Assembly: GCA_965603825.1 (NCBI GenBank)
Contig: CBFDEM010000040.1
Coordinates: 186,001-250,000 of the forward strand
Direction of reading: 5' to 3'
Origin: Blepharisma stoltei ATCC 30299
Taxonomy: Eukaryota; Protista; Ciliophora
DNA: 64,000 bases
In this document: one piece after another, positions 5,376 through 9,943 of the stretch
Layout of the letters: each line of letters starts with the position of its first letter
Numbering within the stretch: position 1 is the first letter of the stretch
Made by a program: the position numbers and the translations under genes
Notes under the pieces: model-generated
The model's database searches: none
What the model saw: the letters and a program-made list of their open reading frames with translations, nothing else
What the model was told of the DNA's origin: nothing

Positions 5376-5822
5376 GATATTACAATTACTTTTGGTAGAA
5401 ATACCAATGGTAAAATGGTACCAATAGATTTCTATCATTTATGGAAGCGAAAACGTAAAAGAATTAAATGGACGTATGAGAAGGAAAAGGAAAAGAACTG
5501 GGTTATTTAATAAGAAATTCAAAATTAATAACTATTGGTAACAGATGATAGGTTTCATATTTATTGCTCTCTAGTTAATTTGAAGGTAAAAATACATAAT
5601 TATAAAATAGATAGTAGTATTTATAAGATTAGAGAATACTCTAGCATTGTCAAGAATTGTAAAAGAATTTCTAGGGTCATAGGTTGGATCTTAATTTTCA
5701 TGATCACCCAAGCTATTCATTATTGATAAAAATTTATCCTTAATTTAAAAGTAGATAAAATGGTATTTTTATAAGCAAATGTTTTATTATTCTTGATAAA
5801 TCAAAACATATAGCAATTCTTA

Positions 5823-6446
5823 CTAAAATAATCTGCAAACCACACGGCATACACAGCAAGCTTCACGATTTCTTGCATCAACTTGTGTGCTGCTTCTACT
5901 TTCATTCCTTCCTTCATAAAATTTCAGCGACTTTTGCAGGGCAATCATAAAAGCTTCCTCAACATTTTCCCCAGTTTTTGCTGAAGTTTCAATATATTTT
6001 AAATAGTAATTCTTCAAAAAGTTTTGCAAATCACTTTCATCAATATCTCTCTCTTCTGTTTTATCACTTTTATTTCCCACTAAAAGAATCCTTGGCAGCT
6101 TTATTCCACTTAAAGTCAGCTCTGAGATCCATTTATTAAGATTTTTAAAACTTTCTCGTTTTGATAAATCGAAAATAAGAATAGCAGCACTAGCATGATT
6201 ATAAAACTGAGTTAATGCAGGTCTGTATTTTATATGTCCCGGCACATCTCAAAGATCAACTTTTACGACTTTTCCTTCTAATTCAAGAGTTCGGTGTTTG
6301 TTTCCAATCCCATGTGTGGTTGGGATATTTTGGTTGAATTCTTCGTTTATAAATAGACTTAGAAGGCTCGATTTGCCAACTTGAGAATCGCCCACAAGTA
6401 CAATTTTGACGCTTACATCGATGTCAATGCTTTCTCTGCTCTCCAT
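5823..6446 (-). CDS. Divergent Rab-family small GTPase
   Basis: ORFs 6249-6446 and 5823-6245 are joined by TGA=Trp at 6249-6251. G1 GDSQVGKS, G3 WDVPGH, G4 NKSD, G5 ETSAK; Cys-rich C-terminus CCVCRVVCRLF. Confidence 0.9.
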
Positions 6447-6536
6447 TATTTTTTTTAAATATGCTGGATATTCTATAATAAATTAAAATTTATCTAAAGA
6501 AATCTAGAGAATTTTATTGAGGTAAAGATTTTTATT

Positions 6537-6800
6537 TTAATAACAATTAATAATTATTTTTAAAATTGTTTTCATTTTTCTTTTAGCCCATATTCTGATT
6601 AGATTTACTAGATTTTGATAATTTTCAAGAGGTGCTTTTACCAAAAAGTAATAGCAAAGGAATAAAAAGGTATTTAGCAGCAATTTCGAAAAACTAATCA
6701 TAATCCTAGATAAGGTCCCTACAAGCTCCAACAGCGTTAAAAAAAATTCTGTATATTGAGTTTGCAAGCCAGAATCATTCATTTTTATATCAATATCCAT
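6537..6800 (-). CDS. Hypothetical small membrane protein
   Basis: 87-aa ATG..TAA ORF with a hydrophobic stretch; fills the gap in a tight chain of minus-strand genes. Confidence 0.45.
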   Translation of the reverse strand: MDIDIKMNDSGLQTQYTEFFLTLLELVGTLSRIMISFSKLLLNTFLFLCYYFLVKAPLENYQNLVNLIRIWAKRKMKTILKIIINCY

Positions 6801-6841
6801 TATTCACTTACAATTCTGATTTATCATATAAAATGTTTATT

Positions 6842-8338
6842 TTATTCTAATGCTATATTTCTCTTCTTATTATGAATTTCATTCGCAAATGCTTCAATTA
6901 TTTGTAAAGATTTGAAATAAAGAACTTTTGCCTCATCAATAGAATCTGATATGGCGAGCACACCAAATCTTCCAAATTCTGCCGTAAAAGAAAAGTTATA
7001 GATAACTATTCCAATCATTCTATCTGAGTCGAATTGAAGCTCTACGTTAGAATTGATAAATTCAATGAAAAATCTAGGCGTAAGTCCTGCATAGATTTCA
7101 TTTATCACGCAATCGTTTGCAAAATAATATTTAAATTTTCCTTCTTTACTTTTCAATAAGCCATCTTCAGTGATTTCAGAATTGATCAGCCTCTTTGCTG
7201 TCAAGAAGGGATGCGAGGTCCCAGTCCACCTTATATTAATTTCTATTGCATAAATATTTAAAGAATCATTTTCTTTTTTCACAACAAAATCAACCCCAAA
7301 TCTTTCTCTACACCCTTTTCTTGACAAAATATTTCCTATTTTGGCAGTTTGGTTCATTATTTCTTGCCGATATTCATTTTTTGCTGGAAATTCACATCCC
7401 ACATAGATTAACCCATGCAAAATTTGTTCATGAGTCGACAAGATTTCAACATCCCCATTTTGATAAATAATCCCTTGGCACGATGGTGAAGAAAAAGCAT
7501 CATCAATTCATATTTCCACCATAACTCCAAAATTCTGGATCTTCTGCTGATAAGATTCTCAATTTTCATTTGCAAACTGGAATTCTATTTTATTTTCTAA
7601 TGCATCTCTAATAGATTCATGCAAATTTGTCCTATCGAAATACTTTGTATGCAAAAGACAAGTCCCAATTCCTCCAAGTCCATTATTCTGCTTTATGACA
7701 AATTTAGTAATTTCTGAATTATTTTCAATATAGAGGGTGGATAAAGCTTCTATTAAGCCTTCTACACTTTTAATAACCCCACTGCTTTTTGGATGTGGGA
7801 TTTCTGCTTCTGCGAATATTTCTTTATTGCCTGCTCTGGTAGCAAAATAAGAATAATGATAGTCATTAGCAAACAGCTGGACATTTAATTCATTGGCAAG
7901 CTCATATTCTAGGTTTGTACCAATATAGGTAACCATCAACGATTTGGAAGGATTAATAAACTGCTTGATTTTTTCTATCAAAATTGGATGCCTATATAGC
8001 TTTTCTACTAGACATGATGAACTTGTATCGTCACAGCTTAAAAATAAAACGCGTTTTTTTAATTCTTTTGGGGTAAAGCTTGAATTTCGAGTAAGGAGCT
8101 GAATGTAATAAAGGATTGTTGATTTTTCTAAAGGTAAACTTGTGGCATAAACGATTTTGATATTGGGATTGGTTAAGTATGAGAAATAATAAAAAAGCCT
8201 TTCTTCATAATTGTGTATTCCTTTAAATTTTGTAAGCTCGTTTGTAGGGAATGATAGGGATGGAATAACTATTATATATTCTGCGTTATCAAGTGTCGCA
8301 TAGGTTTCTCTCCTTCTATCAGATTTATGATCCTCCAT
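6842..8338 (-). CDS. ATP-grasp peptide/carboxylate-amine ligase, PGM1-related (bacterial type), 498 aa
   Basis: ORFs joined across TGA 7559 and 7508. Motifs IPSLS..KGIHNYEERL, SPSCQ..VEILSTHEQIL..YVGCEFPA, RFGVDF, AIEINIRWTGTSHP and EFGRFG match bacterial PGM1-related ligases as I recall them. Confidence 0.8.
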
Positions 8339-8404
8339 GCTGGGTTATTAATTGATAAGCAAATAATAATAATTTTTAGACAAAAAGCAACGGATTTATT
8401 AATA

Positions 8405-9943
8405 TTATGGCTTAGAAATTCTTTCATAAAAAGATTTGGCTTCCAGGATAATTTGTATTATAATCATCATTTCTTCTAACGAAAACCCTAACGATAGAGG
8501 GTCTGTATTGATATTCATCAACAAATCATTCCCAAACACTATTGATCCGCATAACTTGCTACTTCTACATGCATCTGACGATGCTTTATTTCCTGACAAA
8601 AATGCATGGACTATTAGCTCTCTAGCTAAGTAGTCAACTTTGTCGTTTACCATTGAAAAATTGGCATCTGAAGTCCTGAAAACTACATAGTCATTTTTTA
8701 GGTGACAAGATAGCAGAGGACACATAACAGTCCCTTCAGTCACTTTTTCACATTGTTTTGGGATTGTTCCTTCAGATGACTCAGAATAATTCGTCCTTGC
8801 CTCACTTTTGAACTCTCCAGTCGTTAAATTAAATCTTGTAATTTCTAGATCTATAGGATTATGAATTTTCGACCGTATATGTAAAGAAGGCGACTGAATT
8901 GAGACCAAAAATGAGTCGACTGTTAGTTTTTCTGTATGAGAATGATGATTAATAGCATCTGAACAGTAAAATGGGCTCAATAGGAAATCTCTGCCCCAGG
9001 ATCACCATGAATAAGATTCATCTTTATTTTCTGTTTGAACAGGTGGAGGGGTTGCTTTTGAGAGTATCCCATAGAAATCTCTCATAAACATAGTATCATT
9101 TACCAAATTTAGCTTAACCTGTAGGGGAGCCAATAAAAATTTAAGCTGTTGAGTAGATAAATCTTTGATAAGCTGAGCATTATGCGACTTATAATGAGAA
9201 ATCGAATGCTCAGATGCTATATAAGACTGCAATACAAAACTCTGACATCTGACTGTACAAAGCGAATATAGCGATGATGACTTAAATCCGTGGCATAAAG
9301 GGCAGCCTCAGCATTTGATTTTTTCAAATTTATGCATGAGAATTATTTCACTCACAGTATCGTCTGGGCTGCCTGACACAATTCTAAAATTCATATCAGT
9401 AAATTCAATTTTCCTTCATACTCTGTATCCAGCCCCTCCAGGTACTTGCACAAATGGATTTAAAAATTCCTCTTCCCAGTTTTCATTGGTCGTATACAAT
9501 TTAAGCTTGTCTAAATTTAGCTGCCCAATATACAAAGCTTCTTCTCTTCCTCTTATAAGGACTGTTAAGTCCTGTATCTCTAAGTCCAGGTTTCCAATGA
9601 TTTTGCTTAATAAAGTTTCCTCTGATTCACTTACAGGCTGAATAGGATTATTGACAACAGTGTTTTCTGACAAAGAAATTTCGATGAAAACTTGGCATAA
9701 TTTTAGCTGTACAGATCTAGATGAGAGAGAAGTCCATGGGATTGACAATTCTATGCTATTTATTTCCCCACTTATCATCCTAATATAAGGGAGATTCAAT
9801 GATTTTGTGATGGCTAATGCATTTAGCTTGACATTTTCTAAAGCGATGTGGCCACTTCATAAGCTGAGTTTATTTATGTCGACGTTTGATAAGTATTCAG
9901 AAGCCACTCTTAGCAAGGCACTTCGGAGTAATGAAGCAATCAT
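8405..9943 (-). CDS. Chorein-N (VPS13/bridge-like lipid transfer) domain protein, short form, 512 aa
   Basis: ATG 9943; N-terminus LSLW(TGA)SGHIALENVKLN..LNLP..GEINSIELSIPWTSL is the chorein-N signature; ORFs 9416-9799, 9002-9232 and 8405-8980 are in one frame joined by TGA. Confidence 0.75.

Follow-up and report, generated by a model that had tools for sequence, protein, structure and literature searches.

Among the enzymes that have been described so far, the one closest to the gene studied here, both in sequence and in fold, is BesA, the L-propargylglycine--L-glutamate ligase of Streptomyces cattleya (structure 8yi6). BesA joins an amino acid to glutamate. The Streptomyces ATP-grasp peptide ligases represented by PGM1 (structures 3wvq and 3wvr) and by structure 8ynd have the same three-domain ATP-grasp architecture, with a PGM1_C-like C-terminal domain. 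The most similar named prokaryotic proteins are cyanobacterial products of about 520-540 aa, annotated as "peptide ligase PGM1-related protein" or "carboxylate-amine ligase", which show full-length homology to the protein analyzed in this work. They are encoded by stand-alone genes without a conserved neighbourhood, and when the surroundings of three of them were compared, nothing in common was found. A literature search for functional studies on this cyanobacterial and protist ligase family found none. IQCH, a ciliary/flagellar IQ-motif protein, also carries an ATP-grasp domain. We report here on a member of this wider group located in a 64,000-nt stretch of the Blepharisma stoltei genome (hereafter, the window). 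The initial annotation interpreted it as a horizontally acquired bacterial gene, possibly involved in secondary metabolism or in the capping of peptides. The results presented below lead us to consider that the window gene probably encodes a resident ATP-grasp amide ligase, and that it represents one divergent and shortened copy of a ciliate/protist gene family.

The ligase coding sequence is located on the minus strand, at window positions 6842..8338, and consists of 498 codons followed by a TAA stop codon. It had been described as an intronless gene that is complete only if TGA is read as Trp. Upon reading the minus-strand frame from 8338 to 6842, exactly two in-frame TGA codons were found, codon 260 (7559..7561) and codon 277 (7508..7510), and RNA-like contigs are colinear with the gene and show no joints. 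Reading of TGA as Trp has been reported for Blepharisma (PMC4967479). At this locus it is supported by the three other intact paralogs present in the genome (L002, L003 and L004), which have TGG at both positions, and by the adjacent Ras/Rab gene, whose in-frame TGA sits at the conserved Trp position of the LWD motif. Codon 260 corresponds to the Trp of the paralog sequence EDWESF; most homologs have Trp at this site, and the column is at least 90% conserved in a 13-sequence alignment. At codon 277, the ciliate paralogs read VEVWVDD or AEEWIEN. The TGA=Trp translation of the window frame is identical to the database protein P0132, and the full-length ligase was analyzed either as this protein or under genetic code table 4 (UGA=Trp); for family searches, separate pieces were used. 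All the PGM1-type motif blocks listed in the initial annotation were found in the translation: IPSLS...NYEERL, D.S...L.EK, SPSCQ, STHEQIL, GCEFPA, RFGVDF, IEINIRWTGTSHP and EFGRFG.

Profile searches assigned the protein to the ATP-grasp superfamily through Pfam families PF24923 (ATP-grasp_IQCH; 56.4 bits, gathering cutoff 27, E 3.8e-15) and PF02655 (36 bits, E 6.3e-9). The PGM1_C family (PF18105) gave 15.9 bits, below the cutoff of 22.5, and 33 bits with paralog L002. With the NCBIfam BesA model (NF042917), the C-terminal piece of the ligase matched with an E value of 4.6e-30, the scores of the two pieces being 104.8 and 22.7 bits against an equivalog cutoff of 750. BesA 8yi6 was also the best match by sequence among solved structures (E 3.3e-24 on the C-terminal half), and phmmer searches of the solved structures with the ligase pieces did not match PGM1 at E<1. 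An AlphaFold2 model was built from a 70-sequence alignment (pLDDT 94.7, pTM 0.92). When this model was submitted to Foldseek, the three-domain alpha/beta ATP-grasp fold was recovered by matches to BesA, PGM1, PurK and biotin carboxylases, all of them with probability 1.00. BesA 8yi6 ranked first (E 1.7e-33, TM 0.81/0.88, rmsd 2.9 Å over 472 columns), with a structural match that spans the C-terminal domain of the ligase. It was followed by the Streptomyces peptide ligases 8ynd, by PGM1 3wvq/3wvr (TM 0.70/0.79), and by PurK and the biotin carboxylases. The PGM1-related identity initially proposed is right.

We then considered the residues required for ATP-grasp chemistry, mainly on the 70-sequence alignment. 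The core catalytic set (K216, E275, S286, Q288, H303, D350, E366, N368 and R370) is kept. Within it, the acidic and Asn Mg-ATP ligands, the strand Lys and the Arg (K216, D350, E366, N368 and R370) are invariant or nearly so. The E-x-N-x-R motif, which provides the Mg/ATP ligands and the catalytic Arg of ATP-grasp enzymes, is intact as E366-I-N368-I-R370 (7229..7243, minus strand), with no variation at E366 and N368 and with R370 in 68 of the 69 other sequences. Likewise, the strand Lys K216 (7691..7693, minus strand; VIKQN in the window protein, VVKLN in the consensus) is intact and is shared by all 69 other sequences. The window gene encodes a PGM1-related/BesA-type ATP-grasp ligase.

The similarity to the two Streptomyces systems has clear limits. 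BesA and the window ligase share the SPS, HxQ, GC.FPA, FGVDF and E-I-N-x-R motifs, but they are only 22% identical, the C-terminal piece reaches about 105 bits with the BesA model, and no bes-type genes lie next to the ligase. As the equivalog cutoff of 750 is missed and the neighbours are a GTPase gene and a gene without Pfam match, a BesA ortholog is excluded. PGM1, in turn, is 12-14% identical to the window ligase and, unlike PGM1, the window locus lacks a precursor-peptide or biosynthetic cluster context. No gene cluster was found around the window ligase and the cyanobacterial homologs stand alone; the secondary-metabolite or peptide-capping role formerly suggested finds no support.

The name of the best Pfam match ("IQCH-like, ATP-grasp", PF24923), a family common to the window ligase and to IQCH, raises the alternative that the window ligase is the ciliate IQCH ortholog. 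We regard this as very improbable. The genome carries two separate IQCH-like genes, L011 (C20:645514-649287) and L012 (C10:393573-397298), whose products exceed 890 aa and carry clear IQ motifs together with a full-length PF24923 ATP-grasp domain; both genes contain in-frame TGA codons. They score 206 and 142 bits with this family, against 56 bits for the window ligase, in whose translation no IQ motif was found. In the trees described below, these two genes form a distant outgroup that joins the PGM1-related group only via a very long branch, whose length to either side of the root is about 1.4-1.7 substitutions per site. L011 and L012 are the true IQCH counterparts of the ciliate, and the distinction between the ligase and IQCH that had been drawn from the absence of IQ motifs holds.

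Expression of the locus was evaluated by placing contigs from four runs of one study on window positions 5600-9100. Although the run label ("RNA?") is a guess, a gene-shaped contig pattern is what transcript assemblies give. The RNA-like contigs coincide exactly with gene units, namely 5766-6459 (GTPase), 6823-8352 (ligase) and 8373 onward (upstream gene), and the intergenic stretches within 5600-9100 are not covered by any RNA-like contig of the four runs. Three records correspond to the ligase, 6823-8352 (record 2), 6823-8351 (record 8) and 6861-8353 (record 5), and they show neither letters that differ from the window nor joints. The minus-strand extent 6823..8352 begins 14 nt before the ATG and ends 19 nt after the stop codon. 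We read this as transcription of the ligase gene into a monocistronic mRNA that is unspliced, measures about 1.53 kb and has very short UTRs.

Transcript-like units are also apparent at both neighbouring genes. Directly downstream of the ligase lies a Ras/Rab-family GTPase gene (5823..6446, minus strand) with a single in-frame TGA=Trp codon at the switch-II LWD motif; as RNA-like contig 5766-6459 covers it without joints, it is also unspliced. The upstream ORF, of 191 aa (8405-8980, minus strand), has no Pfam match and is the deepest-covered RNA-like unit, with a word depth of 41-101 vs 9-18 for the ligase.

Bacterial contamination or misassembly might be invoked on account of the bacterial-looking family name, and of nothing else, and its probability is negligible. 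The gene uses TGA as Trp at conserved Trp columns, it lies on a large contig between eukaryotic genes that share its code, and the transcript-like contigs are identical to the window. The composition is fully host-like: GC3 is 0.26 in the ligase vs 0.24 and 0.29 in neighbour genes, and GC is also similar to that of the neighbours. The window ligase is a real, transcribed, resident ciliate gene that, as the initial annotation stated, uses the code of its host.

A six-frame search for paralogs in the whole genome (41.46 Mb in 64 contigs) identified five loci of the ligase family: four intact paralogs, the window copy included, and one decayed relic. The other intact paralogs, located on contigs 44 (L002), 24 (L003) and 64 (L004), are 49-55% identical to the C-terminal half of the window protein. 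In the careful ML tree, the window copy and the contig-44 copy are sisters (100/95). At both loci a Ras/Rab GTPase gene with the orientation of the ligase gene comes after it, and therefore both copies arose by duplication of a two-gene unit. The relic (L005, C39:9912-10268) retains 34% identity over about 118 residues and is interrupted by five stops (one TGA, two TAG and two TAA), which shows that the ligase family undergoes birth-and-death turnover. As for the remaining pair, L003 and L004 are 83% identical over 633 residues and one flanking ORF is also similar (49% over 105 residues), indicating a more recent segmental duplication; the contig-64 copy lies within about 8-10 kb of the contig end.

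When paralog L002 was used for a word search, about a dozen proteins at 48-62% identity were retrieved, followed by the cyanobacterial "peptide ligase PGM1-related" proteins, 42-45% identical over their full length (37-38% to the window protein). The close matches are eukaryotic: one of the contigs carries RCC1, PHD, DHHC, PUF, proteasome ATPase and L7Ae genes, and one match comes from MMETSP1397, that is, Climacostomum virens. Orthologs are found in Climacostomum and in further heterotrich-like ciliate contigs. The match lists contain no homolog from a named non-heterotrich ciliate. An exhaustive representative search yielded 2306 clusters at E<1e-3. Those representatives that carry a name and lie near the ciliates come from Symbiodinium natans, Paulinella chromatophora, Diplonema ambulator, a second transcriptome labelled "Hpha" and the amoebozoan Luapelamoeba hula. 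One of the two closest non-ciliate relatives, P0135, is encoded on a 2.6-kb contig that ends with AATAAA and a poly(A) tail; other members of the eukaryote-bearing clade are on transcript-sized, single-gene contigs. This distribution does not agree with an acquisition specific to Blepharisma.

Two different conclusions could be drawn from these similarities. The first one is a recent transfer from a cyanobacterium-like bacterium into heterotrichs, followed by amelioration and local duplication. Among named relatives, the cyanobacterial proteins rank first in similarity, and the match lists lack named ciliates other than heterotrichs. When only non-ciliate proteins of the eukaryote-bearing clade were used to build a profile, cyanobacteria scored highest (635-658 bits) and almost only cyanobacterial clusters were retrieved. 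The branches leading to the cyanobacterial proteins are, however, short (0.1-0.4), and this accounts for their high scores. The second one is that the ciliate genes belong to an older eukaryotic clade. Trees were obtained with FastTree (174 rows) and with IQ-TREE under LG+C20 (quick trees of 88 and 46 rows), all rooted on the two IQCH-like genes of the genome, which are the sole IQCH representatives in them; a careful ML tree was also computed. In the FastTree and quick trees, the ciliates form one clade, sister to P0135+P0140, inside a group that holds all named eukaryotes (local SH-like support 96 in FastTree; SH-aLRT 94 and 92 in the quick trees), and the named cyanobacteria constitute the neighbouring clade. 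In the careful tree, support for the ciliates is 100/100, for their sister relationship to the pair P0135+P0140 97/89, and for a separate cyanobacterial clade, whose members lack the N-terminal module of the ciliate proteins, 100/95; monophyly of all eukaryotes was not recovered in this tree, its deep backbone being unresolved.

An AU test on 46 rows, with the long-branched Luapelamoeba row left out, rejected an exclusive clade of ciliates and cyanobacteria (delta lnL 46, p 0.012; the group was named after the trees had been seen). The ciliates are accordingly neither nested in a bacterial clade nor exclusively sister to one. The ciliates' sister pair includes P0135, a polyadenylated eukaryotic transcript of environmental origin, and the genes from Symbiodinium, Paulinella, diplonemids and the amoebozoan cluster with those of ciliates, not with cyanobacteria. 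In addition, the shared N-terminal module, the several paralogs and the decayed relic indicate long residence. Taken together, these data speak against the claim of a horizontally acquired bacterial gene and make a recent transfer unlikely; the ligase falls in a broadly distributed eukaryotic clade, which is not that of IQCH. Judging from the trees, monophyly of all eukaryotic ligase members is moderately supported. The high scores of the short-branched cyanobacterial proteins would fit a possible origin of the eukaryotic clade from a cyanobacterium-like donor, and any such transfer would be old.

The window copy differs from its ciliate relatives at the N-terminus. The other ciliate proteins start with an extension of about 110 aa, absent from the window ligase, which opens with a conserved "DL..QY" and further contains a stretch of hydrophobic residues (Kyte-Doolittle mean over 19 residues, 1.35-2.25), an SCGSLVRW motif and then a low-complexity linker. 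The initial annotation mentioned an orphan ORF of 87 aa downstream of the ligase. This ORF (6537..6800) is indeed on the same strand as the ligase and starts 41 nt after its stop codon, but it is no orphan. An HMM of the paralog N-termini, built without the 87-aa ORF, was run against the 1185 ORFs of the window and matched none but this one (E 5.8e-8). In the whole genome only four sites of the module were found, the three paralog N-termini and the 87-aa ORF. From its sequence we recognise the ORF here as a copy of the ligase family's hydrophobic N-terminal module that has become detached and has diverged. It has lost the SCGSLVRW motif, and the region 6460-6822, in which it lies, is not covered by any RNA-like contig of the four runs (contigs only being considered). 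The ORF is probably a silent relic.

We also considered the 87-aa ORF as a gene for a partner, a substrate or a precursor peptide, and ruled this out, the ORF being homologous to the N-terminal module of the paralogs. On a different ciliate contig (L006), a small ORF also lies after the ligase homolog; as it is unrelated to the 87-aa ORF, the latter is not a conserved partner gene. The window copy would have lost its hydrophobic module, which probably associates with membranes in the paralogs, and the module would survive as the small, apparently silent downstream ORF. A layout of the type [A]B-A[B] may account for this arrangement: a tandem duplication, followed by loss of the first module and of the second ligase.

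Loss of the module is accompanied by marked sequence divergence. In the careful ML tree the terminal branch of the window copy measures 0.86 vs 0.22 for its sister L002, that is, it is about four times longer. In the 70-sequence alignment, 69 columns show conservation of 85% or more; 10 of them are changed in the window copy and 1 in L002. The changes include K168R, G166A, R172K, G185S, L217Q, N226T and A227C. R168 (7835..7837, minus strand) lies in the sequence ATRAGNK, which corresponds to the family motif GTKxGSR, and it replaces the first conserved Lys of this motif, a residue that is Lys in all 69 other members and that we assume to bind phosphate, as in ATP-grasp enzymes generally. G166A and R172K affect the same motif. 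In a word-index search with P0132, covering sparse Blepharisma data, no close ortholog of the window copy was found, the best non-self match being 38% identical.

K168R, R172K and N226T, together with the long branch, could mean that catalysis is reduced or lost. The window copy would then be a decaying or catalytically dead paralog, still transcribed, in which constraint was relaxed after loss of the N-terminal module. The PGM1_C score below the cutoff, the lack of a close ortholog and the birth-and-death pattern of the family, illustrated by the contig 39 relic with its five stops, are also in line with such decay. Nevertheless, the reading frame is preserved over its 498 codons, most of the substitutions are conservative (K to R, R to K, G to A), the core catalytic and Mg-binding residues are all kept, the fold is predicted with very high confidence, and contigs in the four runs show steady presence of the transcript. 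We therefore hold a dead paralog to be rather improbable, although less so than a recent transfer. Under the preferred interpretation, that of a resident amide ligase, the window copy would evolve at about four times the rate of its sister and would have replaced near-invariant residues around the nucleotide-loop motifs; it would, despite this divergence, keep the core catalytic set and still be transcribed.

With respect to function, the window protein is likely an ATP-dependent carboxylate-amine ligase. It would be a soluble, amide-bond-forming enzyme of the PGM1-related/BesA-like branch of ATP-grasp proteins, encoded by one of four intact paralogs, the sister of the contig-44 copy, within a clade that would span ciliates and unrelated protist groups. 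By analogy with ATP-grasp chemistry, it would bind Mg-ATP and activate a carboxylate by phosphorylation, and the resulting acyl-phosphate would donate its acyl group to an amine. This acceptor would most likely be an amino acid or a small peptide-like metabolite. Domain fusions present in relatives bear on this point. An AstE/AspA-type deacylase is fused C-terminally to the ligase in P0136 (L030), located on a transcript-sized contig, and in P0150, which comes from a eukaryotic transcriptome and belongs to the diplonemid clade. In P0194 the fusion partner is an M20 peptidase, in P0261 a second ATP-grasp domain of the L-amino-acid-ligase type, and in the bacterial forms P0147 and P0185 it is WD40. 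Given its pairing with deacylases and peptidases, the family may act on small amide metabolites. Because of these domain fusions and of the chemistry of BesA, we favour a small-molecule ligase over a peptide capper of the RiPP type.

A broader scenario can be put forward, albeit tentatively, since we consider it about as improbable as a dead paralog. Amide ligases of cyanobacterium-like origin may have been kept across distant protists, where they would produce a metabolite of gamma-glutamyl or dipeptide-like type, or would modify a protein. In ciliates a membrane-anchoring module may have been added, and the window locus may represent an intermediate of "permutation by duplication" or gene fission. 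If true, ciliates, dinoflagellates, Paulinella, diplonemids and an amoebozoan would be the lineages that retained the enzyme, and in the window a soluble, neofunctionalised ligase would adjoin its detached anchor module.

A tempting horizontal-transfer call is corrected by this analysis: the bacterial-looking gene is part of a multigene family that is resident in the genome and whose relatives extend over several protist supergroups. The window locus would provide a tidy natural example of domain-order rearrangement through duplication and truncation. The result points to a conserved enzyme family of cyanobacteria and protists, and the pairings of ligase and hydrolase domains in its members could guide substrate discovery.
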